Assembly (NCBI GenBank): GCA_965644295.1 | Contig: CBFFRP010000526.1 | Location: 1 to 38,424 of the forward strand | From: Paraphysomonas bandaiensis | Lineage: Eukaryota; Protista; Chrysophyceae | Reading direction: 5' to 3' | DNA length: 38,424 nt | In this document: positions 1,585-31,500 of the stretch, piece by piece | Numbering within the stretch: position 1 is the first letter of the stretch | Layout of the letters: every line of letters begins with the position of its first letter | Program-made: the position numbers and the translations under genes | The notes under the pieces: generated by a model | Seen by the model: the letters and a program-made list of their open reading frames with translations, nothing else | What the model was told of the DNA's origin: nothing | Databases searched by the model: none

Positions 1585-4500
1585 TAAGAGGGCTCATGTG
1601 ATGTCATTGTTGTTGTTTTATAGGGGGGTCGTACAGCTCTTCACTATGCTGCCTCTGGAGGTCACAGAGATACATGTGAATATCTCATCAGCAAAGGAGC
1701 AGATGTCACTATAAGAAACAATGTAAGTATCCCCCCTATACATGCATATACAGTGATATACATACATATACAGTGCTAAGAGGGCTCATGTGATGTCATT
1801 GTTATTGTTTTATAGGATGGTTCTACAGCTCTTCACTGGGCTGCCTCTGGAGGTCACAGAGATACATGTGAATATCTCATCAGCAAAGGAGCAGATGTCA
1901 CTATAAGAAACAATGTAAGTAACCCCCCTATACATACATATACAGTGATATACATACATATACAGTGATATACAGTGATATACATGCATATACAGTGCTA
2001 AGAGGGCTCATGTGATGTCATTGTTGTTGGTTTATAGAGGGGTTCTACAGCTCTTCACTTGGCTGCTCGTAAAGGTCACAGAGATACATGTGAATATCTC
2101 ATCAGCAAAGGAGCAGATATCACTATAAGAGACACTGTAAGTAACCCCCCTATACATACATATACAGTGATATACATGCATATACAGTGATATACATACA
2201 TATACAGTGATATACATACATATACAGTGAAATACATACATATACAGTGATATACATACATATACAGTGATATACATGCATATACAGTGATATACATACA
2301 TATACAGTGATATACATACATATGCAGTGATATACATACATATACAGTGATATACATACATATACAGTGATATACATACATATACAGTGATATACATACA
2401 TATACAGTGATATACATACATATACAGTGCGAAGAGGGCTCATGTGATGTTATTGTTGTTGTTTTATAGGATGGTTGGACAGCTCTTCACAAGGCTGCCT
2501 CTGGAAGTCACAGAGATACATGTGAATATCTCATCAGCAAAGGAGCAGATGTCACTATAAGAAACAATGTAAGTAACCCCCCTATACATACATATACAGT
2601 GATATACATACATACATACATATACAGTGATATACATGCATATACAGTTCTAAGAGGGCTCATGTGATGTCATTGTTGTTGGTTTATAGAGGGGTTCTAC
2701 AGCTCTTCACTTGGCTGCTCGTAAAGGTCACAGAGATACATGTGAATATCTCATCAGGGAAGGAGCAGATGTCACTATAAGAAACGATGTAAGTAACCCC
2801 CCTATACATACATATACAGTGATATACATGCATATTCAGTGATATACATACATATACAGTGATATACATACATATACAGTGATATACATACATATACAGT
2901 GATATACATACATATACAGTGCTAAGAGGGCTCATGTGATGTTATTGTTGTTGTTTTATAGGGGGGTTCTACAGCTCTTCACTTGGCTGCCTCTGGAGGT
3001 CACAGAGATATATGTGAATATCTCATCAGGGAAGGAGCAGATGTCACTATAAGAAACGATGTAAGTAACCCCCCTATACATACATATACAGTGATATACA
3101 TGCATATACAGTGATATACATACATATACAGTGATATACATACATATACAGTGATATACATACATATACAGTGATATACATACATATACAGTGCTATGAG
3201 GGCTCATGTGATGTTATTGTTATTGTTTTATAGGATGGTTTTACAGCTCTTCACGAGGCTGCCTCTGAAGGTCACAGAGATACATGTGAATATCTCATCA
3301 GGGAAGGAGCAGATATCACTATAAGAAACGATGTAAGTAACCCCCCTATACATATACAGTGATATACATACATATACAGTGCTAGAGGGCTCATGTGATG
3401 TTATTGTTGTTGTTTTATAGGGGGGTCGTACAGCTCTTCACTATGCTGCCTCTGGAGGTCACAGAGATACATGTGAATATCTCATCAGCAAAGGAGCAGA
3501 TATCACTATAAGAAACAATGTAAGTAACCCCCCTATACATGCATATACAGTGATATACATACATATACAGTGCTAAGAGGGCTCATGTGATGTCATTGTT
3601 ATTGTTTTATAGGATGGTTCTACAGCTCTTCACTGGGCTGCCTCTGGAGGTCACAGAGATACATGTGAATATCTCATCAGCAAAGGAGCAGATGTCACTA
3701 TAAGAAACAATGTAAGTAACCCCCCTATACATACATATACAGTGATATACATACATATACAGTGATATACATACATATACAGTGATATACATGCATATAC
3801 AGTGCTAAGAGGGCTCATGTGATGTCATTGTTATTGGTTTATAGAGGGGTTCTACAGCTCTTCACTTGGCTGCTCGTAAAGGTCACAGAGATACATGTGA
3901 ATATCTCATCAGCAAAGGAGCAGATATCACTATAGGAGGCAGAGTAAGTAACCCCCCTATACATACATATACTGTGATATACATGCATATACAGTGATAT
4001 ACATACATATACAGTGATATACATACATATACAGTGATATACATACATATACAGTGATATACATACATATACAGTGATATACATGCATATACAGTGATAT
4101 ACATACATATACAGTGATATACATACATATACAGTGATATACATACATATACAGTGATATACATACATATACAGTGATATACATACATAATCAGTGATAT
4201 ACATACATATACAGTGCTAAGAGGGCTCATGTGATGTTATTGTTGTTGTTTTATAGGATGGTTGGACAGCTCTTCACAAGGCTGCCTCTGGAGGTCACAG
4301 AGATACATGTGAATATCTCATCAGCAAAGGAGCAGATGTCACTATAAGAAACAATGTAAGTAACCCCCCTATACATACATATACAGTGATATACATGCAT
4401 ATACAGTTCTAAGAGGGCTCATGTGATGTCATTGTTGTTGGTTTATAGAGGGGTTCTACAGCTCTTCACTTGGCTGCTCGTAAAGGTCACAGAGATACAT

Positions 4501-7500
4501 GTGAATATCTCATCAGCAAAGGAGCAGATATCACTATAAGAGACACTGTAAGTAACCCCCCTATACATACATATACAGTGATATACATGCATATACAGTG
4601 ATATACATACATATACAGTGATATACATACATATACAGTGATATACATACATATACAGTTATATACATACATATACAGTGATATACATGCATATACAGTG
4701 ATATACATACATATACAGTGATATACATACATATACAGTGATATACATACATATACAGTGATATACATACATATACAGTGATATACATACATATACAGTG
4801 ATATACATACATATACAGTGCTAAGAGGGCTCATGTGATGTTATTGTTGTTGTTTTATAGGATGGTTGGACAGCTCTTCACAAGGCTGCCTCTGGAGGTC
4901 ACAGAGATACATGTGAATATCTCATCAGCAAAGGAGCAGATGTCACTATAAGAAACAATGTAAGTAACCCCCCTATACATACATATACAGTGATGTACAT
5001 ACATACATACATATACAGTGATATACATGCATATACAGTGCTAAGAGGGCTCATGTGATGTCATTGTTGTTGGTTTATAGAGGGGTTCTACAGCTCTTCA
5101 CTTGGCTGCCTCTGGAGGTCACAGAGATACATGTGAATATCTCATAAGGGAAGGAGCAGATATCACTATAGGAGGCAGAGTAAGTAACCCCCCTATACAT
5201 GCATATACAGTGATATACATGCATATATACATGCATATACATACATATACAGTGTTATACATACATACACAGTGATGTACATACATATACAGTGATATAC
5301 ATACATATACAGTGATATACATACATATACAGTGATATACATACATATACAGTGATATACATACATATACAGTGCTAAGAGGGCTCATGTGATGTCATTG
5401 TTATTGTTTTATAGGATGGTTGGACAGCTCTTCACTATGCTGCTCGTAAAGGTCACAGAGATACATGTGAATATCTCATCAGCGAAGGAGCAGATATCAC
5501 TATAAGAGACACTGTAAGTAACCCCCCTATACATACATATACAGTGATATACATACATATACAGTGATATACATACATATACAGTGATATACATACATAT
5601 ACAGTGATATACATGCATATACAGTGATATACATACATATACAGTGATATACATACATATACAGTGCTAAGAGGGCTCATGTGATGTTATTGTTGTTGTT
5701 TTATAGGATGGTTCTACAGCTCTTCACGAGGCTGCCTCTGGAGGTCACAGAGATACATGTGAATATCTCATCAGCAAAGGAGCAGATATCACTATAGGAG
5801 GCAGAGTAAGTAACCCCCCTATACATACATATACAGTGATATACATACATATACAGTGATATACATACATATACAGTGATATACATACATATACAGTGCT
5901 AAGAGGGCTCATGTGATGTCATTGTTATTGTTTTATAGGATGGTTGGACAGCTCTTCACTATGCTGCTCGTTATGGTCACAGAGATACATGTGAATATCT
6001 CATCAGCGAAGGAGCAGATATCACTATAAGAGACACTGTAAGTAACCCCCCTATACATACATATACTGTGATATACATGCATATACAGTGATATACATAC
6101 ATATACAGTGATATACATGCATATACAGTGGTATACATACATATACAGTGATATACATACATATACAGTGATATACATACATATACAGTGCTAAGAGGGC
6201 TCATGTGATGTCATTGTTATTGTTTTATAGGATGGTTGGACAGCTCTTCACTATGCTGCTCGTTATGGTCACAGAGATACATGTGAATATCTCATCAGCG
6301 AAGGAGCAGATATCACTATAAGAGACACTGTAAGTAACCCCCCTATACATACATATACAGTGATATACATGCATATACAGTGGTATACATACATATACAG
6401 TGTTATACATACATATACAGTGCTAAGAGGGCTCATGTGATGTTATTGTTGTTGTTTTATAGGATGGTTCTACAGCTCTTCACACGGCTGCCTCTAATGG
6501 TCACAGAGATACATGTGAATATCTCATCAGCGAAGGAGCAGATATCACTATAAGAACCAATGTAAGTAACCCCCCTATACATACATATACATTTATATAC
6601 ATACATATACAGTGATATACATGCATATACAGTGATATACATGCATATACAGTGCTAGAGGGCTCATGTGATGTTATTGTTGTTGTTTTATAGGATGGTT
6701 CTACAGCTCTTCACTATGCTGCCTCTGGAGGTCACAGAGATACATGTGAATATCTCATCAGCGAAGGAGCAGATATCACTATAAGAACCAATGTAAGTAA
6801 CCCCCCTATACATACATATACAGTGATATACATACATATACAGTGCTAAGAGGGCTCATGTGATGTTATTGTTGTTGTTTTATAGGATAGTTCTACAGCT
6901 CTTCACAAGGCTGCCTCTAATGGTCACAGAGATACATGTGAATATCTCATCAGCAAAGGAGCAGATATCACTATAAGAGACACTGTAAGTAACCCCCCTA
7001 TACATACATATACAGTGATATACATGCATATACAGTGATATACATACATATACAGTGATATACATACATATACAGTGATATACATACATATACAGTGATA
7101 TACATACATATACAGTGATATACATGCATATACAGTGATATACATACATATACAGTGATATACATACATATACAGTGATATACATACATATACAGTGATA
7201 TACATACATATACAGTGATATACATGCATATACAGTGATATACATACATATACAATGATATACATACATATACAGTGATTTACATACATATACAGTGATT
7301 TACATACATATACAGTGATATACATACATACATACATATACAGTGATATACATACATATACAGTGATATACATACATATACAGTGATATACATACATATA
7401 CAGTGATATACATACATATACAGTGCTAAGAAGGCTCATGTGATGTCATTGTTGTTGTTTTATAGGATGGTTCTACAGCTCTTCGCAAGGCTGCCTCTAA

Positions 7501-9751
7501 TGGTCACAGAGATACATGTGAATATCTCATCAGCGAAGGAGCAGATATCACTATAGGAGACAATGTAAGTAACCCCCCTATACATGCATATACAGTGATA
7601 TACATACATATACAGTGATATACATACATATACAGTGATATACATGCATATACAGTGATATACATACATATACAGTGCTAAGATATTTTTTATAGGATGG
7701 TTCTACAGCTCTTCACGAGGCTGCCTCTGGAGGTCACAGAGATACATGTGAATATCTCATCAGCGAAGGAGCAGATATCACTATAAGAGACGATGTAAGT
7801 AACCCCCCTATACATACATATACAGTGATATACATACATATACAGTGATATACATACATATACAGTAATATACATACATATACAGTGATATACATGCATA
7901 TACAGTGATATACATACATATACAGTGCTAAGATATTTTTTATAGGATGGTTCTACAGCTCTTCACTATGCTGCCTCTGGAGGTCACAGAGATACATGTG
8001 AATATCTCATCAGCGAAGGAGCAGATATCACTATAAGAAACGATGTAAGTAACCCCCCTATACATACATATACAGTGATATACATACATATACAGTGCTA
8101 AGAGGGCTCATGTGATGTTATTGTTGTTGTTTTATAGGATGGTTCTACAGCTCTTCACAAGGCTGCCTCTAATGGTCACAGAGATACATGTGAATATCTC
8201 ATCAGCGAAGGAGCAGATATCACTATAAGAGACAATGTAAGTAACCCCCCTATACATACATATACAGTGATATACATACATATACAGTGATATACATACA
8301 TATACAGTGATATACATGCATATACAGTGATATACATACATATACAATGATATACATACATATACAGTGATATACATACATATACAGTGATATACATACA
8401 TATACAGTGATATACGTACATATACAGTGATATACATACATATACAGTGCTAAGAGGGCTCATGTGATGTCATTGTTATTGTTTTATAGGATGGTTGGAC
8501 AGCTCTTCACTATGCTGCTCGTAAAGGTCACAGAGATACATGTGAATATCTCATCAGCAAAGGAGCAGATATCACTATAAGAGACACTGTAAGTAACCCC
8601 CCTATACATACATATACAGTGATATACATGCATATACAGTGATATACATGCATATACAGTGATATACATACATATACAGTGATATACATGCATATACAGT
8701 GATATACATACATATACAGTGATATACATACATATACAGTGCTAAGAGGGCTCATGTGATGTTATTGTTGTTGTTTTATAGGATGGTTCTACAGCTCTTC
8801 ACTATGCTGCCTCTAATGGTCACAGAGATACATGTGAATATCTCATCAGCGAAGGAGCAGATATCACTATAGGAGACAATGTAAGTAACCCCCCTATACA
8901 TGCATCTACAGTGATATACATACATATACAGTGATATACATACATATACAGTGCTAAGATATTTTTTATAGGATGGTTCTACAGCTCTTCACGAGGCTGC
9001 CTCTGGAGGTCACAGAGATACATGTGAATATCTCATCAGCGAAGGAGCAGATATCAATATAAGAGACGATGTAAGTAACCCCTCTATACATACATATACA
9101 GTGATATACATACATATACAGTGATATACATACATATACAGTGATATACATACATATACAGTGATATACATGCATATACAGTGATATACATACATATACA
9201 GTGCTAAGATATTTTTTATAGGATGGTTCTACAGCTCTTCACGAGGCTGCCTCTGGAGGTCACAGAGATACATGTGAATATCTCATCAGCGAAGGAGCAG
9301 ATATCAATATAAGAGACGATAAAGTAACCCCTCTATACATACATATACAGTGATATACATACATCTACAGTGATATACATACATATACAGTGATATACAT
9401 GCATATACAGTGATATACATACATATACAGTGCTAAGATATTTTTTATAGGATGGTTCTACAGCTCTTCACGAGGCTGCCTCTGGAGGTCACAGAGATAC
9501 ATGTGAATATCTCATCAGCGAAGGAGCAGATATCACTATAAGAGACGATGTAAGTAACCCCTCTATACATACATATACAGTGATATACATACATATACAG
9601 TGATATACATACATATACAATGATATACATACATATACAGTGATATACATACATATACAGTGATATATACATACATATACAGTACTATACATGCATATAC
9701 AGTGATATACATACATATACAGTGATATACATACATATACAGTGATATACA
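1585..9751 (+). repeat. Left (inverted) arm of ankyrin cassette array: 30 open 99-bp exons without a first exon
   Basis: Same unit on the + strand, from exon 1624-1722 (GGRTALHYAASGGHRDTCEYLISKGADVTIRNN) to exon 9451-9549 (DGSTALHEAASGGHRDTCEYLISEGADITIRDD). Similarity starts abruptly inside an intron at 1585 (taagagggctc). No N-cap exon was found in 1-1584. Confidence 0.95.
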
Positions 9752-12700
9752 GTATCTCTGTGACCTCCAGAGGCAGCCTTGTGAAGAGCTGTAGAACCAT
9801 CCTATAAAACAACAACAATAACATCACATGAGCCCTCTTAGCACTGTATATGCATGTATATCACTGTATATGTATGTATAGGGGGGTTACTTACATTGGT
9901 TCTTATAGTGATATCTGCTCCTTCGCTGATGAGATATTCACATGTATCTCTGTGACCTCCAGAGGCAGCATAGTGAAGAGCTGTAGAACCATCCTATAAA
10001 AAATATCTTAGCACTGTATATGTATGTATATCACTGTATATGCATGTATATCACTGTATATGTATGTATATCACTGTATATGTATGTATATCACTGTATA
10101 TGTATGTATGGAGGGGTTACTTACATCGTCTCTTATAGTGATATCTGCTCCTTCGCTGATGAGATATTCACATGTATCTCTGTGACCTCCAGAGGCAGCC
10201 TCGTGAAGAGCTGTAGAACCATCCTATAAAAAATATCTTAGCACTGTATATGTATGTATATCACTGTATATGTATGTATAGGGGGGTTACTTACAGTGTC
10301 TCTTATAGTGATATCTGCTCCTTTGCTGATGAGATATTCACATGTATCTCTGTGACCTTTACGAGCAGCATAGTGAAGAGCTGTCCAACCATCCTATAAA
10401 ACAATAACAATGACATCACATGAGCCCTCTTAGCACTGTATATGTATGTATATCACTGTATATGTACGTATATCACTGTATATGTATGTATATCACTGTA
10501 TATGTATGTATATCATTGTATATGTATGTATATCACTGTATATGCATGTATATCACTGTATATGTATGTATATCACTGTATATGTATGTATATCACTGTA
10601 TATGTATGTATAGAGGGGTTACTTACATCGTCTCTTATAGTGATATCTGCTCCTTCGCTGATGAGATATTCACATGTATCTCTGTGACCTCCAGAGGCAG
10701 CCTCGTGAAGAGCTGTAGAACCATCCTATAAAAAATATCTTAGCACTGTATATGTATGTATATCACTGTATATGCATGTATATCACTGTATATGTATGTA
10801 TATCACTGTATATGTATGTATAGGGGGGTTACTTACAGTGTCTCTTATAGTGATATCTGCTCCTTTGCTGATGAGATATTCACATGTATCTCTGTGACCT
10901 TTACGAGCAGCATAGTGAAGAGCTGTCCAACCATCCTATAAAACAATAACAATGACATCACATGAGCCCTCTTAGCACTGTATATGTATGTATATCACTG
11001 TATATGTACGTATATCACTGTATATGTATGTATATCACTGTATATGTATGTATATCACTGTATATGTATGTATATCATTGTATATGTATGTATATCACTG
11101 TATATGCATGTATATCACTGTATATGTATGTATATCACTGTATATGTATGTATATCACTGTATATGTATGTATAGAGGGGTTACTTACTTTGTCTCTTAT
11201 AGTGATATCTGCTCCTTCGCTGATGAGATATTCACATGTATCTCTGTGACCATTAGAGGCAGCCTTGTGAAGAGCTGTAGAACCATCCTATAAAACAACA
11301 ACAATAACATCACATGAGCCCTCTTAGCACTGTATATGTATGTATATCACTGTATATGCATGTATATCACTGTATATGTATGTATATCACTGTATATGTA
11401 TGTAAATCACTGTATATGTATGTATATCATTGTATATGTATGTATATCACTGTATATGCATGTATATCACTGTATATGTATGTATATCACTGTATATGTA
11501 TGTATATCACTGTATATGTATGTATAGAGGGGTTACTTACATCGTCTCTTATAGTGATATCTGCTCCTTCGCTGATGAGATATTCACATGTATCTCTGTG
11601 ACCTTTACGAGCAGCATAGTGAAGAGCTGTCCAACCATCCTATAAAACAACAACAATAACATCACATGAGCCCTCTTAGCACTGTATATGTATGTATATC
11701 ACTGTATATGTATGTATAGGGGGGTTACTTACATTGGTTCTTATAGTGATATCTGCTCCTTCGCTGATGAGATATTCACATGTATCTCTGTGACCTCCAG
11801 AGGCAGCCTCGTGAAGAGCTGTAGAACCATCCTATAAAAAATATCTTAGCACTGTATATGTATGTATATCACTGTATATGCATGTATATCACTGTATATG
11901 TATGTATATAAATGTATACGTATGTATATCACTGTATATGTATGTATATCACTGTATATGTATGTATAGAGGGGTTACTTACATCGTCTCTTATAGTGAT
12001 ATCTGCTCCTTCGCTGATGAGATATTCACATGTATCTCTGTGACCATTAGAGGCAGCCTCGTGAAGATCTGTAGAACCATCCTATAAAAAATATCTTAGC
12101 ACTGTATATGTATGTATATCACTGTATATGCATGTATATCACTGTATATGTATGTATATCACTGTATATGTATGTATATCACTGTATATGTATGTATAGG
12201 GGGGTTACTTACTCTGGTTCTTATAGTGATATCTGCTCCTTTGCTTATGAGATATTCACATGTATCTCTGTGACCTCCAGAGACAGCCTTGCGAAGAGCT
12301 GTAGAACCATCCTATAAAACAACAACAACAACATCACATGAGCCCTCTTAGCACTGTATATGTATGTATAGGGGGGTTACTTACATTGGTTCTTATAGTG
12401 ATATCTGCTCCTTCGCTGATGAGATATTCACATGTATCTCTGTGACCATTAGAGGCAGCCTTGTGAAGAGCTGTAGAACCATCCTATAAAACAACAACAA
12501 TAACATCACATGAGCCCTCTTAGCACTGTATATGTATGTATACCACTGTATATGCATGTATATCACTGTATATGTATGTATAGGGGGGTTACTTACATTG
12601 TTTCCTATAGTGATATCTGCTCCTTTGCTTATGAGATATTCACATGTATCTCTGTGACCTCCAGAGGCAGCCTTGCGAAGAGCTGTAGAACCATCCTATA

Positions 12701-15700
12701 AAACAACAACAACAACATCACATGAGCCCTCTTAGCACTGTATATGTATGTATATCACTGTATATGTATGTATAGGGGGGTTACTTACATTGGTTCTTAT
12801 AGTGATATCTGCTCCTTCGCTGATGAGATATTCACATGTATCTCTGTGACCATTAGAGGCAGCCTTGTGAAGAGCTGTAGAACCATCCTATAAAACAACA
12901 ACAATAACATCACATGAGCCCTCTTAGCACTGTATATGTATGTATACCACTGTATATGCATGTATATCACTGTATATGTATGTATAGGGGGGTTACTTAC
13001 AGTGTCTCTTATAGTGATATCTGCTCCTTCGCTGATGAGATATTCACATGTATCTCTGTGACCATAACGAGCAGCATAGTGAAGAGCTGTCCAACCATCC
13101 TATAAAACAATAACAATGACATCACATGAGCCCTCTGAGCACTGTATATGTATGTATATCACTGTATATGTATGTATATCACTGTATATGTATGTATACC
13201 ACTGTATATGCATGTATATCACTGTATATGTATGTATATCACTGTATATGCATGTATATCACAGTATATGTATGTATAGGGGGGTTACTTACAGTGTCTC
13301 CTATAGTGATATCTGCTCCTTCGCTGATGAGATATTCACATGTATCTCTGTGACCTTTACGAGCAGCATAGTGAAGAGCTGTCCAACCATCCTATAAAAC
13401 AATAACAATGACATCACATGAGCCCTCTTAGCACTGTATATATATGTATATCACTGTATATGTATGTATATCACTGTATATGTATGTATATCACTGTATA
13501 TGCATGTATATCACAGTATATGTATGTATAGGGGGGTTACTTACTCTGCCTCCTATAGTGATATCTGCTCCTTTGCTGATGAGGTATTCACATGTATCTC
13601 TGTGACCTCCAGAGGCAGCCAAGAGAAGAGCTGTAGAACCCCTCTATAAACCAACAACAATGACATCACATGAGCCCTCTTAGCACTGTATATGCATGTA
13701 TATCACTGTATATGTATGTATGTATGTATACCACTGTATATGTATGTATAGGGGGGTTACTTACATTGGTTCTTATAGTGATATCTGCTCCTTCGCTGAT
13801 GAGATATTCACATGTATCTCTGTGACCATTAGAGGCAGCCTTGTGAAGAGCTGTAGAACCATCCTATAAAACAACAACAATAACATCACATGAGCCCTCT
13901 TAGCACTGTATATGTATGTATACCACTGTATATGCATGTATATCACTGTATATGTATGTATAGGGGGGTTACTTACAGTGTCTCTTATAGTGATATCTGC
14001 TCCTTCGCTGATGAGATATTCACATGTATCTCTGTGACCATAACGAGCAGCATAGTGAAGAGCTGTCCAACCATCCTATAAAACAATAACAATGACATCA
14101 CATGAGCCCTCTGAGCACTGTATATGTATGTATATCACTGTATATGTATGTATATCACTGTATATGTATGTATACCACTGTATATGCATGTATATCACTG
14201 TATATGTATGTATATCACTGTATATGCATGTATATCACAGTATATGTATGTATAGGGGGGTTACTTACAGTGTCTCCTATAGTGATATCTGCTCCTTCGC
14301 TGATGAGATATTCACATGTATCTCTGTGACCTTTACGAGCAGCATAGTGAAGAGCTGTCCAACCATCCTATAAAACAATAACAATGACATCACATGAGCC
14401 CTCTTAGCACTGTATATGTATGTATATCACTGTATATGTATGTATATCACTGTATATGTATGTATATCACTGTATATGTATGTATATCACTGTATATGTA
14501 TGTATATCACTGTATATGTATGTATAGGGGGGTTACTTACTCTGCCTCCTATAGTGATATCTGCTCCTTCCCTTATGAGATATTCACATGTATCTCTGTG
14601 ACCTCCAGAGGCAGCCAAGTGAAGAGCTGTAGAACCCCTCTATAAACCAACAACAATGACATCACATGAGCCCTCTTAGCACTGTATATGCATGTATATC
14701 ACTGTATATGTATGTATGTATGTATATCACTGTATATGTATGTATAGGGGGGTTACTTACAGTGTCTCTTATAGTGATATCTGCTCCTTCCCTGATGAGA
14801 TATTCACATGTATCTCTGTGACCATTATAGGCAGCATAGTGAAGAGCTGTATAACCCCACTATAAAACAACAACAATAACATCACATGAGCCCTCTTAGC
14901 ACTGTATATGTATGTATATCACTGTATATGTATGTATATCACTGTATATGTATGTATATCACTGTATATGTATGTATATCACTGTATATGTATGTATATC
15001 ACTGTATATGCATGTATATCACTGTATATGTTTGTATAGGGGGGTTACTTACAGTGTCTCTTATAGTGATATCTGCTCCTTTGCTGATGAGATATTCACA
15101 TGTATCTCTGTGACCTTTACGAGCAGCATAGTGAAGAGCTGTCCAACCATCCTATAAAACAATAACAATGACATCACATGAGCCCTCTTAGCACTGTATA
15201 TGTATGTATATCACTGTATATGTATGTATATCACTGTATATGTATGTATATCACTGTATATATATGTATATCACTGTATATATATGTATATCACTGTATA
15301 TGTATGTATATCACTGTATATGTATGTATATCACTGTATATGTATGTATAGGGGGGTTACTTACTCTGCCTCCTATAGTGATATCTGCTCCTTCCCTTAT
15401 GAGATATTCACATGTATCTCTGTGACCTCCAGAGGCAGCCAAGTGAAGAGCTGTAGAACCCCTCTATAAACCAACAACAATGACATCACATGAGCCCTCT
15501 TAGCACTGTATATGCATGTATATCACTGTATATGTATGTATGTATGTATATCACTATATGTATGTATAGGGGGGTTACTTACATTGTTTCTTATAGTGAC
15601 ATCTGCTCCTTTGCTGATGAGATATTCACATGTATCTCTGTGACCTCCAGAGGCAGCCTTGTGAAGAGCTGTCCAACCATCCTATAAAACAATAACAATA

Positions 15701-18700
15701 ACATCACATGAGCCCTCTTAGCACTGTATATGTATGTATATCACTGTATATGCATGTATATCACTGTATATATATGTGTATCACTGTATATGTATGTATA
15801 TCACTGTATATGTATGTATATCACTGTATATGTATGTATATCACTGTATATGTATGTATAGGGGGGTTACTTACAGTGTCTCTTATAGTGATATCTGCTC
15901 CTTCCCTTATGAGATATTCACATGTATCTCTGTGACCTCCAGAGGCAGCCAAGTGAAGAGCTGTAGAACCCCTCTATAAACCAACAACAATGACATCACA
16001 TGAGCCCTCTTAGCACTGTATATGCATGTATATCACTGTATATGTATGTATGTATGTATATCACTGTATATGTATGTATAGGGGGGTTACTTACATTGTT
16101 TCCTATAGTGACATCTGCTCCTTTGCTGATGAGATATTCACATGTATCTCTGTGACCTCCAGAGGCAGCCTTGTGAAGAGCTGTCCAACCATCCTATAAA
16201 ACAACAACAATAACATCACATGAGCCCTCTTAGCACTGTATATGTATGTATATCACTGTATATGTATGTATATCACTGTATATGTATGTATATCACTGTA
16301 TATATATGTATATCACTGTATATGTATGTATATCACTGTATATGTATGTATATCACTGTATATGTATGTATGTATGTATATCACTGTATATGTATGTATA
16401 GGGGGGTTACTTACTCTGCCTCCTATAGTGATATCTGCTCCTTTGCTTATGAGATATTCACATGTATCTCTGTGACCTCCAGAGGCAGCCTTGCGAAGAG
16501 CTGTAGAACCATCCTATAAAACAACAACAACAACATCACATGAGCCCTCTTAGCACTGTATATGTATGTATATCACTGTATATGTATGTATATCACTGTA
16601 TATGTATGTATAGGGGGGTTACTTACAGTGTCTCTTATAGTGATATCTGCTCCTTCGCTGATGAGATATTCACATGTATCTCTGTGACCATAACGAGCAG
16701 CATAGTGAAGAGCTGTCCAACCATCCTATAAAACAATAACAATGACATCACATGAGCCCTCTGAGCACTGTATATGTATGTATATCACTGTATATGTATG
16801 TATATCACTGTATATGTATGTATACCACTGTATATGCATGTATATCACTGTATATGTATGTATATCACTGTATATGCATGTATATCACAGTATATGTATG
16901 TATAGGGGGGTTACTTACAGTGTCTCCTATAGTGATATCTGCTCCTTCGCTGATGAGATATTCACATGTATCTCTGTGACCATAACGAGCAGCATAGTGA
17001 AGAGCTGTCCAACCATCCTATAAAACAATAACAATGACATCACATGAGCCCTCTTAGCACTGTATATGTATGTATATCACTGTATATGTATGTATATCAC
17101 TGTATATGTATGTATATCACTGTATATGTATGTATATCACTGTATATGTATGTATAGGGGGGTTACTTACTCTGCCTCCTATAGTGATATCTGCTCCTTC
17201 CCTTATGAGATATTCACATGTATCTCTGTGACCTCCAGAGGCAGCCAAGTGAAGAGCTGTAGAACCCCTCTATAAACCAACAACAATGACATCACATGAG
17301 CCCTCTTAGCACTGTATATGCATGTATATCACTGTATATGTATGTATGTATGTATATCACTGTATATGTATGTATAGGGGGGTTACTTACATTGTTTCTT
17401 ATAGTGACATCTGCTCCTTTGCTGATGAGATATTCACATGTATCTCTGTGACCTCCAGAGGCAGCCTTGTGAAGAGCTGTCCAACCATCCTATAAAACAA
17501 CAACAATAACATCACATGAGCCCTCTTAGCACTGTATATGTATGTATATCACTGTATATGTATGTATATCACTGTATATGTATGTATATCACTGTATATG
17601 TATGTATATCACTGTATATGTATGTATATCACTGTATATGCATGTATATCACTGTATATGTTTGTATAGGGGGGTTACTTACAGTGTCTCTTATAGTGAT
17701 ATCTGCTCCTTTGCTGATGAGATATTCACATGTATCTCTGTGACCTTTACGAGCAGCATAGTGAAGAGCTGTCCAACCATCCTATAAAACAATAACAATG
17801 ACATCACATGAGCCCTCTTAGCACTGTATATGTATGTATATCACTGTATATGTATGTATATCACTGTATATGTATGTATATCACTGTATATATATGTATA
17901 TCACTGTATATGTATGTATATCACTGTATATGTATGTATATCACTGTATATGTATGTATATCACTGTATATGTATGTATAGGGGGGTTACTTACTCTGCC
18001 TCCTATAGTGATATCTGCTCCTTCCCTTATGAGATATTCACATGTATCTCTGTGACCTCCAGAGGCAGCCAAGTGAAGAGCTGTAGAACCCCTCTATAAA
18101 CCAACAACAATGACATCACATGAGCCCTCTTAGCACTGTATATGCATGTATATCACTGTATATGTATGTATGTATGTATATCACTATATGTATGTATAGG
18201 GGGGTTACTTACATTGTTTCTTATAGTGACATCTGCTCCTTTGCTGATGAGATATTCACATGTATCTCTGTGACCTCCAGAGGCAGCCTTGTGAAGAGCT
18301 GTCCAACCATCCTATAAAACAATAACAATAACATCACATGAGCCCTCTTAGCACTGTATATGTATGTATATCACTGTATATGCATGTATATCACTGTATA
18401 TGTATGTATATCACTGTATATGTATGTATATCACTGTATATATATGTGTATCACTGTATATGTATGTATATCACTGTATATGTATGTATATCACTGTATA
18501 TGTATGTATATCACTGTATATGTATGTATAGAGGGGTTACTTACATTGGTTCTTATAGTGATATCTGCTCCTTCCCTTATGAGATATTCACATGTATCTC
18601 TGTGACCTCCAGAGGCAGCCAAGTGAAGAGCTGTAGAACCCCTCTATAAACCAACAACAATGACATCACATGAGCCCTCTTAGCACTGTATATGCATGTA

Positions 18701-21190
18701 TATCACTGTATATGTATGTATGTATGTATATCACTGTATATGTATGTATAGGGGGGTTACTTACATTGTTTCCTATAGTGACATCTGCTCCTTTGCTGAT
18801 GAGATATTCACATGTATCTCTGTGACCTCCAGAGGCAGCCTTGTGAAGAGCTGTCCAACCATCCTATAAAACAACAACAATAACATCACATGAGCCCTCT
18901 TAGCACTGTATATGTTTATATATCACTGTATATGTATGTATATCACTGTATATGTATGTATATCACTGTATATATATGTATATCACTGTATATGTATGTA
19001 TATCACTGTATATGTATGTATATCACTGTATATGTATGTATGTATGTATATCACTGTATATGTATGTATAGGGGGGTTACTTACTCTGCCTCCTATAGTG
19101 ATATCTGCTCCTTCCCTTATGAGATATTCACATGTATCTCTGTGATCTCCAGAGGCAGCCAAGTGAAGAGCTGTAGAACCCCTCTATAAACCAACAACAA
19201 TAACATCACATGAGCCCTCTTAGCACTGTATATGCATGTATATCACTGTATATGTATGTATGTATGTATGTATATCACTGTATATGTATGTATAGGGGGG
19301 TTACTTACATTGTTTCTTATAGTGACATCTGCTCCTTTGCTGATGAGATATTCACATGTATCTCTGTGACCTCCAGAGGCAGCCTTGTGAAGAGCTGTCC
19401 AACCATCCTATAAAACAACAACAATAACATCACATGAGCCCTCTTAGCACTGTATATGCATGTATATCACTGTATATGTATGTATATCACTGTATATGTA
19501 TGTATATCACTGTATATATATGTATATCACTGTATATGTATGTATATCACTGTATATGTATGTATATCACTGTATATGTATGTATATCACTGTATATGTA
19601 TGTATAGGGGGTTACTTACTCTGCCTCCTATAGTGATATCTGCTCCTTCCCTTATGAGATATTCACATGTATCTCTGTGACCTCCAGAGGCAGCCAAGTG
19701 AAGAGCTGTAGAACCCCTCTATAAACCAACAACAATGACATCACATGAGCCCTCTTAGCACTGTATATGCATGTATATCACTGTATATGTATGTATGTAT
19801 GTATATCACTGTATATGTATGTATAGGGGGGTTACTTACATTGTTTCTTATAGTGACATCTGCTCCTTTGCTGATGAGATATTCACATGTATCTCTGTGA
19901 CCTCCAGAGGCAGCCTTGTGAAGAGCTGTCCAACCATCCTATAAAACAACAACAATAACATCACATGAGCCCTCTTAGCACTGTATATGCATGTATATCA
20001 CTGTATATGTATGTATATCACTGTATATGTATGTATATCACTGTATATATATGTATATCACTGTATATGTATGTATATCACTGTATATGTATGTATATCA
20101 CTGTATATGTATGTATATCACTGTATATGTATGTATAGGGGGGTTACTTACTCTGCCTCCTATAGTGATATCTGCTCCTTCCCTTATGAGATATTCACAT
20201 GTATCTCTGTGACCTCCAGAGGCAGCCAAGTGAAGAGCTGTAGAACCCCTCTATAAACCAACAACAATAACATCACATGAGCCCTCTTAGCACTGTATAT
20301 GCATGTATATCACTGTATATGTATGTATGTATGTATATCACTGTATATGTATGTATAGGGGGGTTACTTACATTGTTTCTTATAGTGACATCTGCTCCTT
20401 TGCTGATGAGATATTCACATGTATCTCTGTGACCTCCAGAGGCAGCCTTGTGAAGAGCTGTCCAACCATCCTATAAAACAACAACAATAACATCACATGA
20501 GCCCTCTTAGCACTGTATATGTATGTATATCACTGTATATGTATGTATATCACTGTATATGTATGTATATCACTGTATATATATGTATATCACTGTATAT
20601 GTATGTATATCACTGTATATGTATGTATGCATGTATATCACTGTATATGCACGTATAGGGGGGTTACTTACATTGGTTCTTATAGTGATATCTGCTCCTT
20701 CCCTTACGAGATATTCACATGTATCTCTGTGACCTTCAGAGGCAGCCAAGTGAAGAGCTGTAGAACCCCTCTATAAACCAACAACAATGACATCACATGA
20801 GCCCTCTTAGCACTGTATATGCATGTATATCACTGTATATGTATGTATGTATGTATATCACTGTATATGCATGTATAGGGGGGTTACTTACATTGTTTCT
20901 TATAGTGATATCTGCTCCTTTGCTGATGAGATATTCACATGTATCTCTGTGACCTCCAGAGGCAGCATAGTGAAGAGCTGTAGAACCATCCTATAAAACA
21001 ACAACAATAACATCACATGAGCCCTCTTAGCACTGTATATGTATGTATGTATGTATGTATATCACTGTATATGTATGTATATCACTGTATATGTATGTAT
21101 ATCACTGTATATGTATGTATATCACTGTATATGTATGTATATGTATGTATATCACTGTATATGTATGTATATCACTGTATATGTATGTAT
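1736..21190. repeat. Intronic 20-bp minisatellite (CATACATATACAGTGATATA)n in the array introns
   Basis: Directly visible. Copy number ranges from <1 (12344-12370) to ~22 (6998-7424) and explains nearly all intron length variation. Confidence 0.95.
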
Positions 21191-21349
21191 AGGGGGGTTA
21201 CTTACATCGTCTCTTATAGTGATATCTGCTCCTTCGCTGATGAGATATTCACATGTATCTCTGTGACCATTATAGGCAGCATAGTGAAGAGCTGTAGAAC
21301 CATCCTATAAAACAATAACAATGACATCACATGAGCCCTCTTAGCACTG

Positions 21350-21381
<32 letters not shown>

Positions 21382-22059
21382 TGTATGCATGTATGTGTGT
21401 ATGTATGTATGTATGTACGTATGTATGTATGTATGTATGTATGTACGTATGTATGTATGTATATATGTATGTATGTATGTATGTACGTATGTATGTATGT
21501 ATGTATGTATGTATGTATGTATGTATGTATGTATGTATGCATGTATGTGTGTATGTATGTATGTATGTATGTACGTATGTATGTATGTATGTATGTATGT
21601 ATGTATGTATGTACGTATGTATGTATGTATGTATGTACGTATGTATGTATGTATGTATGTATGTATGTGTGTATGTCTGTATGTATGTATGTAGGTATGT
21701 ATGTATGTATGTATGTATGTACGCATGTATGTATGTATGTATGTATGTATGTATGTATGTATGTATGTGTGTATGTATGTATGTATGTATATATGTATGT
21801 ATGTATGTATGTATGAATGTATGTATGTATGTATGTATGTATGTGTGTATGTCTGTATGTATGTATGTAGGTATGTATGTATGTATGTATGTATGTATGT
21901 ACGCATGTATGTATGTATGTATGTATGTATGTATGTATGTATGTGTGTATGTATGTAGGTATGTATGTATGTATGTATGTATGTACGCATGTATGTATGT
22001 ATGTATGTATGTATGTATGTATGTATGTATGTATGTATGTGTGTATGTATGTATGTATG

Positions 22060-22093
<34 letters not shown>

Positions 22094-22135
22094 TGTATGT
22101 ATGTATGTATGTATGTGTGTATGTATGTATGTATG

Positions 22136-22169
<34 letters not shown>

Positions 22170-22275
22170 TGTATGTATGTACCTTATCTTGTGTATTGAT
22201 ATTATCGCCCCTCTCAACGCATCTCTTCACACCACTCCAATCACCCTCAGAAGCAGCTGTAGTAATATCATCCAT
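9685..22275 (-). CDS. Multi-exon ankyrin-repeat protein: N-cap exon + 45 single-repeat 99-bp exons + truncated terminal exon (~1550 aa if all exons are included)
   Basis: First exon 22275-22183 (MDDITTAASEGDWSGVKRCVERGDNINTQDK|gt). Then 45 exons, each flanked by ...tttatag| and |gtaagtaacccc, 99 nt, phase 0, from 21304-21206 (DGSTALHYAAYNGHRDTCEYLISEGADITIRDD) to 9993-9895. All match the ankyrin consensus G-x-T-A-L-H-x-A-A-x-x-G-H...L-I-x-x-G-A-D. The last acceptor opens a half exon at 9801 that reads through the inversion junction to TAG at 9687-9685. The 3' end and the exon inclusion pattern are uncertain. Confidence 0.85.
9752..21346 (-). repeat. Right arm of ankyrin exon-intron cassette array (45 complete exons + 1 truncated, 9801-9752)
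   Basis: Tandem units of ~170-350 bp, each acceptor + 99-bp ankyrin exon + donor + 20-bp minisatellite, all on the - strand. No stop or indel seen in any complete exon. Confidence 0.95.
21348..22180. repeat. (TATG)n/(CATA)n microsatellite of ~830 bp filling intron 1 of the ankyrin gene
   Basis: Tetranucleotide run with scattered variants (tacg, catg, tgtg, tagg). It begins at the exon-1 donor and ends at the standard array acceptor block. Confidence 0.97.
22183..22275 (-). CDS. First coding exon, ankyrin N-terminal capping repeat
   Basis: ATG at 22275; 31 codons with AAxxGD...V...VERGDNIN, typical of an ankyrin N-cap; GT donor at 22182-22181 in phase 0, matching all downstream exons. A probable upstream intron 22385-22276 (gtatct...tataag) could add Met-Lys from ATG 22391. 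Confidence 0.85.
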
Positions 22276-25584: not shown

Positions 25585-28500
25585 ATGAGATGGACTCTTA
25601 GTTCCACCACACGACAGTCCCTCGTATGCATCACAAGATGCCCTCATGTGTGTATGTATATGAATCCACTCATTCTCTGTGTGTTTGTGTCTCAGATAAC
25701 ACTCACAGTTGCCTCAGTAGCCTCTCAAGAGTCAGCGCTGTGTGACTTCATTCAGGCGACTGATGTTACCTCCGCATGGTCTGAGTGGACCTGTGCGGAT
25801 GTGGGGAACAAGTGCAGCTTCAGAGGAGTCACCTGCACAGGATCGAACATAACCAGAGTGGACTTATCTGATGATGGAATATCAGGATCTCTCCCCTCAT
25901 CTATCGGTGATCTGACTGCACTGACATATTTGAATATTGCTTCCAACTCTCTCAACGGTACACTCCCCTCATCACTGGGTCAGCTAACTTCTCTTAGTAA
26001 TCTCGATCTATATTCCAATTCCTTAACGGGTACACTCCCCTCATCACTGGGTCAGATGACTTCTCTTAGTGTTCTCGATCTATATTCCAATTCCTTAACG
26101 GGTACACTCCCCTCATCACTGGGTCAGATGACTTCTCTTAGTAATCTCTATCTACATTATAATTCCTTAACGGGTACTCTCCCCTCATCTATCAGCGATA
26201 TGACTGCATTGACATATTTGCATATTGGTCACAACTCTCTAATCGGTACACTCCCCTCATCATTGGGTCAGATGACTTCTCTTAGTAATCTCTATCTATA
26301 TTATAATTCCTTAACGGGTTCTCTCCCCTCATCACTGGGTCAGATGACTTCTCTTAGTGTTCTCGATCTATATTCCAATTCCTTAACGGGTCCTCTCCCG
26401 CCATCAATCAGCGATATGACTGCATTGACATATTTGAGTATTGGTTCCAACTCTCTAATCGGTACACTCCCCTCATCATTGGGTCAGATGACTTCTCTTA
26501 GTAATCTCTATCTACATTATAATTCCTTTACGGGTACTCTCCCCTCATCTATCAGCGATATGACTGCATTGACATATTTGCATATTGGTCACAACTCTCT
26601 AATCGGTACACTCCCCTCATCATTGGGTCAGATGACTTCTCTTAGTTATCTAAGTCTAGATGGCAATTCCTTAACGGGTCCTCTCCCCTCATCTATCAGT
26701 GACATGACTGCATTGACATATTTGCATATTGGTTACAACTCTCTCTACGGTACACTCCCCTCATCACTGGGTCAGATGACTTCTCTTAGTTATCTCCGTC
26801 TATATTATAATTCCTTAACGGGTTCTCTCCCCTCATCTATCAGTGATATGACTGCATTGACATATTTGCATATTGGTTACAACTCTCTCTACGGTAGTCT
26901 CCCCTCATCACTGGGTCAGATGACTTCTCTTAGTTATCTCGATCTACATTATAATTCCTTAACGGGTCCTCTCCCCTCATCTATCAGTGATATGACTGCA
27001 TTGACATATTTGCATATTGGTTACAACTCTCTCAACGGTACTCTCCCCTCATCACTGGGTCAGATGACTTCTCTTCGTGAACTCTATCTATATGACAATT
27101 CCTTAACGGGTCCTCTCCCCGACTCTTTTTCCAGTCTAACTAAATTACGAATTCTAGGGGGTCAGAACAATATGTTCACAGGTGTCTACCCTTCCGAGCT
27201 ATGCACAATGACTCAATTAACAACATTCTACCTCACACAAACCAGTTACCATGAATGCTTGAGACCCACATCAGCCCCGACCCCTTTCCCTTCCGCACAA
27301 CCGACAAATAACTTGGAAGAGGCAGCGCTGTGTGACTTCATTCAGGCGACTGATGTTACCTCCGTATGGTCTGAGTGGACCTGTGCGGATGTGGGGAACA
27401 AGTGCAGCTTCACTGGAGTCACCTGCACAGGATCGAACATAGCCGGAGTGGACTTATATGATGATCATATATATGGATCTCTCCCCTCATCTATCGGTGA
27501 TCTGACTGCATTGACATATTTGAGTATTGGTTCCAACTCTCTAATCGGTACACTCCCCTCATCATTGGGTCAGATGACTTCTCTTAGTAATCTCTATCTA
27601 CATTATAATTCCTTAACGGGTTCTCTCCCCTCATCACTGGGTCAGATGACTTCTCTTAGTTATATCTATCTATCTTCCAATTCCTTAACGGGTCCTCTCC
27701 CCTCATCTATCAGCGATATGACTGCATTGACATATTTGCATATTGGTGACAACTCTCTCATCGGTACGCTCCCCTCATCACTGGGTCAGATGACTTCTCT
27801 TAGTTATCTCGGTCTATATGACAATTCCTTAACGGGTCCTCTCCCCTCATCACTGGGTCAGATGACTTCTCTTAGTGTTCTCAATCTACGTGACAATTCC
27901 GTAACGGGTCCTCTCCCCTCATCACTAGGTCAGATGACTTCTCTTAGTTATCTCTATCTAAATTCCAATTCCTTAACGGGTCCTCTCCCCGACTCTCTTT
28001 CCAGTCTAACTAAATTACGATTTCTAAGGGGTGATGGCAATATGTTCACAGGTGTCTACCCTTCCGAGCTATGCACAATGACTCAATTAACAACATTCTA
28101 CCTCACACAAACCAGTTACCATGAATGCTTGAGACCCACATCAGCCCCGACCCCTTTCCCTTCCGCACAACCGACAAATAACTTGGAAGAGGCAGCGCTG
28201 TGTGACTTCATTCAGGCGACTGATGTTACCTCCGTATGGTCTGAGTGGACCTGTGCGGATGTGGGGAACAAGTGCAGCTTCACTGGAGTCACCTGCACAG
28301 GATCGAACATAACCAGAGTGGACTTATATAGTGATCATATATATGGATCTCTCCCCTCATCTATCAGTGATATGACTGCATTGACATATTTGAGTATTGC
28401 TTACAACTCTCTCCACGGTACACTCCCCTCATCACTGAGTCAGATGACTTCTCTTCGTGATCTGTATCTATCTTCCAATTCCTTAACGGGTCCTCTCCCC

Positions 28501-31500
28501 TCATCTATCAGCGATATGACCGCATTGACATATTTGCATATTGGTTGGAACTCTCTCATCGGTACACTCCCCTCATCACTGGGTCAGATGACTTCTCTTA
28601 GTTATCTCGATCTATATTCCAATTCCTTAACGGGTCCTCTCCCCTCATCTATCAGTGATATGACCGCATTGAGATATTTGAGTATTGGTTGGAACTCTCT
28701 CAACGGTACACTCCCCTCATCACTGAGTCAGCTGACTTCTCTTAGTTCTCTCTACCTATATTCCAATTCCTTAACGGGTACACTCCCCTCATCACTGGGT
28801 CAGATGACTTCTCTTAGTTATCTCTACCTAAATTCCAACTCCTTAACGGGTCCTCTTCCCAACTCTTTTTCCAGTTTAACTAATTTACGAGTTCTAAAGG
28901 GTGATGGCAATATGTTCACAGGTGTCTACCCTTCCGAGCTATGCACAATGACTCAATTAACAACATTCTACCTCACACAAACCAGTTACCATGAATGCTT
29001 GAGACCCACATCAGCCCCGACCCCTTTCCCTACAGGACAACCATCTGGTCCTACAGGACAACCATCTGGTCCTACAGGACAACCAACTGGTCAACCTAGT
29101 GGACAACCATCTACCGAACCAACAGGACAGCCATCTGGCCAACCTAGTGGACAACCATCTGGGATCCCTACTGGGCAGCCATCATGCCAACCTAGTGAAC
29201 CGCCATCTGGTGAACCGACAGGACAGCCATCTCATCAACCTAGTGGACAACCATCTGGGATCCCTACTGGGCAGCCATCATGCCAACCTAGTGGACAACC
29301 ATCATGTCAACCCACAGGTGAGCCATCTGTGATCCCTACTGGACAGCCATCTGGTCAACCCAGTGGACAACCATCTGGTCAACCTAGTGGACAGCCATCT
29401 TGTGAACCCACAGGACAACCATCTGGCCAACCTAGTGTACTGCCATCAAGCGAACCAACAGGGCAGCCATCTGGTCAACCTAGTGGACCGCCATCTGGGC
29501 AACCTAGTGGACCGCCATCTGGGCAACCTACGGGGCAGCCATCATGCCAACCTAGTGGACAACCATCTGGCCTACCTAGTGAACCGCCATCTCGTGAACC
29601 CACAGGACAGCCATCTGGGATCCCTACTGGACAGCCATCTAGTGAACCCACAGGTGAGCCATCTGGTCAACCTAGTGCACAGCCATCAATCGAACCGACA
29701 GGACAGCCATCATGCCAACCCAGTGGACAACCATCTAGGATCCCTACTGGACAGCCATCATGCCAACCTAGTGAACCGCCATCTGGTGAACCTAGTGGAC
29801 AGCCATCTCGTCAACCTAGTGGACAACCATCTGGGATCCCTACTGGGCAGCCATCATGCCAACCCACAGGTGAGCCATCTGGTCAACCTAGTGGACAACC
29901 ATCTGGGATCCCTACTGGGCAGCCATCTGATGAACCTAGTGGAAAACCATCTGGTCAACCTAGTGGACCGCCATCTGGGCAACCTACGGGGCAGCCATCA
30001 TGCCAACCTAGTGGACAACCATCTGGCCTACCTAGTGGACCGCCATCTTATGAACCCACAGGACAGCCATCTAGTGAACCCACAGGTGAGCCATCTGGTC
30101 AACCTAGTGGACAACCATCTACCGAACCGACAGGACAGCCATCATGCCAACCCAGTGGACAACCATCTAGGATCCCTACTGGACAGCCATCTGGGATCCC
30201 TACAGAACAGCCATCATGCCAACCTACTGAACCGCCATCTCGTCAACCTAGTGAACAGCCATCTGGGATCCCTACTGGGCAGCCATCATGCCAACCCACA
30301 GGTGAGCCATCTGGTCAACCTACGGGGCAGCCATCATGCCAACCTAGTGGACAACCATCTGGCCTACCTAGTGAACCGCCATCTTTTGAACCCACAGGAC
30401 AGCCATCTGGGATCCCTACTGGACAGCCATCTAGTGAACCCACAGGTGAGCCATCTGGTCAACCTAGTGCACAGCCATCAATCGAACCGACAGGACAGCC
30501 ATCATGCCAACCCAGTGGACAACCATCTAGGATCTCTACTGGACAGCCATCTGGGATCCCTACTGGGCAGCCATCATGTCAACCCACAGGTGAGCCATCT
30601 CGTCAACCTAGTGGGCAGCCGTCAAGTGTACCAACAGGGCAACCATCTTGGATTTCTTCTAGATTACCATCAGAACAACCTATAGCACAGCCATCTCGGA
30701 TTCCAACACTACCGTCATCAAGTCAACCATCTCGAATACCCACAGGACAGCCATTTGGTGAACCAACAGCACCACCATTTGTCCAACCTACTGCACTGCC
30801 ATCTGGACAACTACATTCGATTTTTCCATCGACGCATGCTCCTTCAGTTGCACGTTTACCTGAGATATTACATATGGACTGGACTGTGTATCGAGATCGC
30901 GTTACACTTTCAATTCAGCTCTCTAACAGAGGCTATGTGTATTGTGCAAGCTTTGAATCTATGGTAATCGTCGACTCTGTAAATTCTGTAATTTCTACAA
31001 ACAATTTTGACTACGTGGACGATGCTTCTGTTAACGCCTCAATCACAATAACATCTCTAACACCGTCCACGAATTACACACTCTATTGTGTCACGCAAAA
31101 CAATCACCTGTTAGCTCCCTCGTATGAAGAAATGCTCTCGAATGCAGTCGTTTGGGAAACTCTCTGTTGTAAGAGCATATTTGTGGATTTGAATATGTTT
31201 GTACTGCAAGAAAATAGTGTGGGCTGGAATATGGTTGTAGTAACCCTTTCGGCAGCTCCGTCATCCAGCAGTGATATGTGGATATCTGCTGGGGTGTCAA
31301 ACAGCAGTGGTTCGTACACTGTATCCCCCTTTCTGGATGACATTGTGACTGTTACACGTTCCTCATGGTCGAAGACACATTACTTCACTGTCGCCAACTG
31401 TGCGCCGGGACTGTACACACTACAGGTGACTATGATGGATTTTGCAGTGCAGCAGGAGTATGATGTAATCTTCCGAAGTGGGCAGTCGTTCACTGTAGAG

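Follow-up and report, generated by a model that had tools for sequence, protein, structure and literature searches.

One exon of a recently duplicated ankyrin-repeat array in Paraphysomonas bandaiensis was probably overwritten by short gene conversion

How does one exon of a tandem array come to differ at 16 of its 99 bases from its positional counterpart in a duplicate block when the introns on both sides of the two exons are identical? The question is raised by a contig of the chrysophyte Paraphysomonas bandaiensis. The window analyzed here is the whole of this contig (C526, 38,424 bases), which belongs to an assembly of 62.5 Mb in 669 contigs. Its minus strand carries an array of 45 ankyrin-repeat exons, part of which is present in two tandem copies, and the exon in question, hereafter the WGY exon, lies in one of them. 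We consider it probable that a short non-crossover gene conversion overwrote this exon after a recent duplication of the block, and that the donor is absent from the assembly. The features on which the argument turns are the following.

9895..21304, minus strand: ankyrin-repeat exon array, 45 exons of 99 bases each (exon table, exon and intron types, Pfam Ank)
13977..16513, minus strand: copy A of the ~2.65 kb block duplication, array exons 17-26 (alignment and self-BLAST)
16627..19183, minus strand: copy B of the block duplication, array exons 27-36 (alignment and self-BLAST)
14761..14859, minus strand: the WGY exon, WGYTALHYAAYNG..IREG..ITIRDT, with intact AG acceptor and GTAAGT donor, unique in the assembly
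17391..17489, minus strand: its positional counterpart, occupied by the common exon DGWTALHKAASGG..ISKG..VTIRNN; the same exon sequence recurs at 15583, 18213, 19309, 19840 and 20372
14640..14760, minus strand: sense-3' intron of the WGY exon, 121 bp, identical to 17270-17390 and to three more introns adjoining DGW..K exons
14860..15052, minus strand: sense-5' intron of the WGY exon, 193 bp, identical to 17490-17682 and of a type present only in these two copies

The two copies were aligned, and from a 20-base minisatellite indel at 14408-14427 to a substitution at 15282 they differ solely by 16 substitutions, all located between 14762 and 14859. The differences within 14428-15281 are therefore confined to the exon, with 16 of 99 bases changed against none of 755 in the flanks (Fisher p = 3e-16). 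The 121-bp and 193-bp intron pairs match letter for letter, and thus have identical minisatellite copy numbers, as the sequence-only reading of this DNA had stated. The 16 changes sit in 10 codons (1, 3, 8, 11, 12, 23, 24, 28, 32 and 33), and every one of them is nonsynonymous. The tryptophan at codon 1 (W1) and the tyrosine at codon 3 (Y3) occur in no other exon of the window. Elsewhere in the genome, W1 was found on contigs C241 and C461, and Y3 on C114, C260, C124, C461 and C438, in exons that differ from the WGY exon at 11 to 23 bases.

Both exons are regular members of the array. All 45 array exons are 99 bases long (33 residues), open, in phase 0-0 and bordered by a conserved AG and GTAAGT. 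The introns between them (71-253 bp) consist of copies of a 20-base minisatellite between near-invariant ends. Searched one by one against the Pfam profile PF00023 (gathering cut-off 21.1 bits), each exon corresponds to one Ank unit in register. The WGY exon scored 44.5 bits (E 1e-11) and its counterpart 43.1 bits (E 4e-11), both over profile positions 1/2-32/33.

Accumulation of point mutations does not account for the patch, since the divergence of the introns of the two copies (4 of 1547 bases) predicts just 0.26 changes per 99 bp. Under a Poisson model, the probability of at least 16 changes is ~1e-23, and that of at least five, the number of bases of the WGY exon that are private with respect to its best assembled relatives (see below), is ~7e-6. 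A point-mutation origin was rejected for the patch as a whole and for its five private bases. Moreover, 11 of the 16 variant bases are states found in the nearest relatives, on contigs C508 and C639. The changes at 14761-14859 are clustered, bounded by identical flanks and in excess of the background divergence, as in gene conversion. Together, these results are best explained by a non-reciprocal replacement in which the variable blocks were copied from a template, in agreement with the gene conversion first proposed for this exon.

The duplication that serves as the control is slightly smaller than the ten-exon tandem repeat initially described. The near-identity of copies 13977-16513 and 16627-19183 stands, but it extends over no more than nine complete exons and the first 29 bases of the next; in copy A, near-identity to copy B spans about 13936 to 16443. 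A global alignment of 13864-16626 with 16514-19300 gave 2695 identical columns out of 2815. Of the three rare intron variants cited as shared by the copies, two (tttgtatagg and tcactatatg) are indeed confined to one occurrence in each copy, but the third, ctctgagc, occurs three times (13133, 14109 and 16759). Outside 14428-15281, the copies are further separated by minisatellite indels of 20 and 40 bases. Over the whole duplication, substitutions affect 30 of 990 exon bases versus 4 of 1547 intron bases (Fisher p = 3e-9), and they fall in clusters. Besides the WGY patch, a cluster of two bases replaces K by Y in the exon at 14269 as compared with 16919, and a cluster of three bases distinguishes RDT at 15875 from RTN at 18545, with an intron difference 13 bases away.

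A second exchange event is seen at the edge of the duplication, in the following exon.

16415..16513, minus strand: hybrid exon at the end of copy A, differing from 19085-19183 at 9 sites, all from 16444 on

The first 29 plus-strand bases of this exon are those of its copy-B counterpart at 19085-19183. The foreign part, from exon base 30 on together with ~80 bp of the next intron, matches the exon at 12597-12695 and its intron. The boundary of this event lies in the middle of an exon, and its tract crosses an exon-intron border. A simple unequal-crossover hybrid (19085-type and 13765-type) formed where the two copies meet was rejected because the exon matches 12597. The counterpart exon at 19085-19183 (minus strand) has a peculiarity of its own, SGDH in place of the usual SGGH: aspartate replaces the conserved glycine before the invariant histidine, which is a change in the framework and not at a hypervariable codon. 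The array also retains an older nested duplication, 12888-13430 versus 13864-14407, in which a stretch of 543 bases, comprising the exons at 13001 and 13293 with their introns, is identical to the one with the exons at 13977 and 14269. The fourth exon position of the block is represented by three paralogous sites (13765, 14761 and 17391), which hold three different exons in near-identical introns.

To which of the two copies did the change occur? All pairs were compared among the 126 subfamily units with a flank of 100 bases on each side. The flanks of the WGY exon match those of five units with 0-1 mismatch per side (17391, 20372, 16095, 19840 and, on the plus strand, 4861), and all five bear a DGWTALHKAASGG..ISKG..VTI(R/G)NN exon. 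The same intron context otherwise houses a single exon type, so that parsimony points to the WGY exon as the derived one. Further pairs of units with the same flanks and different exons were found, with 2, 3, 4, 7 and 11 differences. The opposite polarity, in which the progenitor block had the WGY exon and the exon of copy B was later overwritten by the abundant neighboring DGW..K..VTIRNN exon, appears unlikely. It has the advantage that exact donors for exon 17391-17489 lie nearby (15583, 18213, 19309, 19840 and 20372), with flanks identical for at least 100 bp, so that this step calls for no donor beyond those assembled. However, it requires two events instead of one, since the WGY exon must earlier have entered an intron context otherwise restricted to DGW..K exons, and a WGY donor must still be postulated for that entry.

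We then return to conversion of the copy-A exon and to its donor, which the sequence-only reading held to lie probably outside the window, implying either a genome-wide pool of cassettes or a cDNA-templated event. The pool exists: the wider family is present on dozens of contigs. The subfamily was counted by its invariant core HRDTCEYLI, allowing at most 2 mismatches, which gave 139 occurrences in the assembly, essentially all of which were examined; units were located on eight contigs (C526, C508, C483, C124, C374, C639, C640 and C241). As proposed, the window contains no donor, but none was found assembly-wide either by BLAST of the exon, by a search for a 19-mer with at most 2 mismatches or by the core census. 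Exact-pattern scans of metagenome contigs of the Joint Genome Institute (JGI) with a WGY-specific 28-mer and a family-invariant 29-mer likewise gave no hit. The best assembled candidates, C508:7172 and C639:4752 (DGSTALHYAAYNG..ISEG..ITIRDT), differ from the WGY unit by 5 exon bases and 2 bases of the upstream intron. The five leftover exon bases are in codon 1 (TGG versus GAT), codon 3 (TAT versus TCT) and codon 23 (AGG versus AGC). Two exons of the window itself are partially related to the WGY exon.

21206..21304, minus strand: closest relative in the window, DGSTALHYAAYNG..ISEG..ITIRDD, sharing the HYAAYNG block, 7 bases different
15875..15973, minus strand: exon identical to the WGY exon at sense positions 67-99 (REGADITIRDT), a possible source type of its 3' part

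The pieces of the WGY exon occur in assembled members of the family: W1 with the matching upstream intron end on C241 (WGSTALHLAAFRG..IREG..ITIRDD), Y3 on the five contigs named above, the HYAAYNG block on C508, on C639 and at 21206, and REGADITIRDT at 15875. A mosaic copying model applied to 161 candidate units left 7 mismatches with one donor, 3 with two donors and zero with four segments. The four-segment mosaic was rejected as a literal history because it needs 3 switches and includes segments of 1 and 7 bases. Five private mutations after the event being very improbable (the P of ~7e-6 above), the donor was most likely a family unit that is missing from the assembly, lying perhaps in an array that the assembly does not resolve or on the second haplotype, and itself a mosaic of blocks. 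The family arrays are incompletely assembled, as deduced from the many short contigs that consist of repeats only, such as C508 (9.8 kb), C639 (5.2 kb) and C640 (7.0 kb). Separately, C374:207-840 and C640:5605-6238 gave equal scores and lengths with one query and have a common exon series (VGW / YGS..YAAYNG / VGW); they could represent a single locus, either as haplotigs or as contig ends that overlap.

The scatter of the family over short repeat-only contigs is also a sign of assembly difficulty, and assembly errors are known to arise at tandem repeats. The duplication could accordingly be false (haplotypes or collapsed repeats placed in series), or the WGY exon could be a chimeric consensus generated by mis-mapped reads during polishing. 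We regard such an artefact as improbable. The WGY exon has an intact open reading frame and splice sites, and all of its changes are at hypervariable codons of the family. Base A8 occurs in just one other subfamily unit, on C124, and is hardly the product of a mixed consensus. No near-identical alternative contig exists for the region, the best being 92% identical. Reads were checked over 14541-14930 in four runs, using Logan unitigs of 44-88 bases. No unitig over the exon carried other letters, and the WGY-specific bins had low but non-zero depth in all four runs, which is weak evidence since partly overlapping unitigs of this length may account for the depth. Three points nevertheless weigh against conversion of the copy-A exon as we reconstruct it: the assembly, with its 139 subfamily units, yielded no donor of the WGY exon, the direction was deduced by parsimony, and the read data for the WGY position and for the tandem duplication consist of 44-88 base unitigs only.

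Was the exon itself the unit of exchange? Measured against copy B, the tract is at least 98 bp (14762-14859) and at most 854 bp (14428-15281) long. The proposal that replacement was precise to the exon is not supported, since the near-invariant intron ends cannot resolve the boundaries and the other patches of the duplication are smaller than an exon or cross its borders. Of the 126 units, 125 match the WGY flank over at least 10 bases on the sense-3' side and 67 (53%) over at least 40; on the sense-5' side, the corresponding numbers are 84 and 28 (22%) of 126. Both flanks are matched over at least 40 bases by 17 units (13%). Flank matches are so common that a tract of up to ~180 bp would leave no trace in the introns. 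Within the exon, at least 100 units share an unchanged core of 29 bases, and recurrent variation (minor letter in at least 4 units) is found at codons 1, 3, 7, 8, 10-12, 22-24, 28 and 31-33. On this reading, the patch looks exon-shaped because the near-identical intron ends and the exon framework let only hypervariable codons record the event.

The closest assembled units disagree with the WGY unit both in the exon (codons 1-3) and in the intron (positions -12/-14 and -19). Given a donor like these units, the start of the tract would therefore lie inside the exon. Linkage between variants was also compared across 97 distinct units by normalized mutual information (NMI). The NMI between the upstream intron haplotype and exon codons 1-3 was 0.55, versus 0.30-0.51 between blocks of the exon and 0.13-0.22 in shuffled controls. 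Linkage across the intron-exon border is thus no weaker than linkage within the exon, indicating that the border is not a preferred breakpoint. The wider evidence speaks against the exon as the unit of exchange.

The same observations bear on the proposed involvement of complementary DNA (cDNA), in which the reverse-transcribed, spliced transcript of a paralogue would have served as repair template and only the exon would have been copied. The coincidence of the visible patch with the exon is what this scheme would produce. However, differences are present at base 1 (14859) and base 98 (14762) of the 99 exon bases, leaving no homology arms inside the exon, and the cDNA would have no homology outside it either, because its spliced neighbors are other exons and not the introns present here. 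Both introns were retained and no exon fusion occurred, and the identical intron flanks offer ample homology to a donor consisting of genomic DNA. Furthermore, the intron ends are unable to report where the tract ends, other patches are sub-exonic or reach into introns, and the linkage of the 5' intron to codons 1-3 is as strong as any within the exon. A cDNA template is accordingly disfavored, and we judge it extremely improbable.

With genomic DNA as template, the following course would account for the locus. A recent unequal crossover would have duplicated the block of ~2.65 kb, that is nine and a fraction exon-intron units, in the 45-exon gene. A break or a stalled fork may then have occurred in or near the unit, the minisatellite introns being plausible fragile sites. 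A misaligned DNA unit, paralogous or allelic, could have been the template for repair without crossover, by synthesis-dependent strand annealing. Strand invasion and resolution would have relied on the conserved intron ends and on the invariant framework of the exon, possibly with patchy mismatch repair. The donor would have combined W1 as on C241, the HYAAYNG block as on C508, on C639 and at 21206, and IREG..ITIRDT as at 15875. Retention of such patches at codons 1, 3, 8, 11-12, 23-24, 28 and 31-33 would fit diversifying selection on the ankyrin binding surface. With the exception of 8, 23 and 28, we take these codons to be the positions that are randomized in designed ankyrin repeat proteins.

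Short-tract ectopic gene conversion is known in the MHC, KIR and globin families. As in these families, the patch reported here is non-reciprocal, measures between tens and hundreds of bases, lies between identical sequences and consists of clustered changes that match variants of paralogues. In contrast to them, no donor was identified, and the recipient is not a separate gene but a single exon within an internal repeat of 45 exons.

One-repeat-per-exon genes subject to exon shuffling have been described in Ectocarpus, in the ROCO-leucine-rich repeat (LRR) and NB-ARC-tetratricopeptide repeat (TPR) families (Zambounis et al., 2012, PMC3341825), with a follow-up on brown-algal ROCO genes (PMC11378527). 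The array resembles them in that a repeat of fixed length is one exon in symmetric phase 0, duplication and exchange of units take place both inside a locus and between loci, and variability is located in the repeat domain; the host, like Ectocarpus, is a marine stramenopile. It differs by its 99-base ankyrin exons, as opposed to LRR exons of 72 bases or TPR, by introns made of 20-base minisatellites, and by the absence within the window of ROC-COR or NB-ARC on the gene. The present case is also a single dated replacement in an otherwise identical duplicate.

In Tetrahymena, LRR arrays are built from 90-bp exons (Xiong et al., 2019, PMC6564038). Repeat exons of identical length, uniform introns and recent clonal expansions of exon-intron units are common to both systems, and in both the proposed driving force is ectopic recombination or unequal crossover. 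The Tetrahymena exons are 90 bp long with phase 2 introns and a LINE-like element (long interspersed nuclear element), whereas no retroelement was seen beside the units of P. bandaiensis. Fungal NOD-like receptors (Paoletti, Saupe and Clave, 2007, PMC1805685; PMC13449251) contain WD40, ANK and TPR repeats that are highly conserved internally; these evolve in concert, are exchanged within and between loci and are under positive selection at their interaction surface. The array shares with them near-identical units that are homogenized by unequal crossover and ectopic gene conversion and exchanged among paralogues as well as within them, with hypervariability kept at a few codons of the interaction surface. 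The fungal repeats lie in a continuous intron-less open reading frame attached to NACHT or NB-ARC, and repeat-induced point mutation (RIP) adds mutations to them; in the present array, by contrast, the repeats are distributed one per exon, and homogenization extends to the introns. The literature on diatom ankyrin exon arrays yielded nothing specific.

These parallels raise the possibility of programmed diversification, by which cassettes would be copied from a genome-wide pool into expressed ankyrin arrays by a dedicated, possibly somatic machinery. The large dispersed pool of cassettes and the confinement of variation to hypervariable codons agree with such a process, and somatic recombination was proposed by the Ectocarpus authors for a similar architecture (PMC3341825). 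However, no recombination signal motifs were seen in the sequence that was read, and ordinary germline ectopic recombination explains everything observed. We therefore hold a programmed system to be very unlikely. The same low probability attaches to the more specific version in which a germline-targeted or somatic process has its boundaries at or near splice sites, the WGY exon is one captured event and its private bases result from error-prone copying. Lamprey variable lymphocyte receptors and vlsE-like systems are the programmed cassette systems available for comparison. If dedicated diversification were nonetheless true, the arrays would be a protist analogue of cassette-based antigen receptors.

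The surroundings of the array were annotated as follows.

22183..22275, minus strand: putative first exon (ATG, 31-residue N-terminal cap) with a GT donor behind it (read from the sequence, splicing presumed)
21305-22182, between the putative first exon and the array: presumed first intron, ~880 bp of (TACA/TATG)-type tetranucleotide repeat

The tetranucleotide repeat yields long spurious open reading frames on both strands. At its 3' end, the minus-strand array terminates in a half exon, DGSTALHKAASGGHRDT, at 9752-9801 (minus strand), which is joined straight to a minisatellite at 9550-9750 oriented like that of a plus-strand array. A second ankyrin array occupies about 1600-9550 on the plus strand, and the junction at 9550-9801 marks an inversion between two head-on arrays. 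A trivial fold-back artefact of assembly was considered and found unlikely, the inverted arms of the window being only ~96% identical. The minus-strand gene, taken as the 31-residue exon plus the 45 ankyrin exons up to the inversion junction in the window, encodes no ROC-COR, NB-ARC, kinase or other signaling domain. Adjoining the ankyrin arrays, an intron-less open reading frame of 2786 residues (25585-33945, plus strand) contains plant-type LRRs in three blocks, together with a long PT/GQPS repeat region and one REJ domain (Pfam LRR_8 3e-84, PT 2e-113, REJ 2e-41), and its predicted product looks like a receptor-like protein. Silicon-transporter genes (PF03842) were detected above the curated cut-off on contigs C348, C406, C398, C150, C405, C298 and C149, which suggests a silicifying host, and the sequencing runs that contain the contig are of marine origin.

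The WGY exon is an ordinary, though unusually clean, instance of the patchy conversion that reshuffles one-repeat-per-exon arrays. It establishes no new mechanism, and the claims of exon precision and of a cDNA template are unsupported. Its value lies in the near-identical duplicate, which acts both as internal clock and as control and thereby exposes a clean, recent and single exchange event in a hypervariable family of repeat exons. Given that the 16 changes are all nonsynonymous and have left the introns intact, the variable codons were moved by templated patches and not by point mutation. The pool of templates is probably larger than the assembly, and the WGY exon provides a practical target for gauging the rate at which these candidate receptor arrays diversify.

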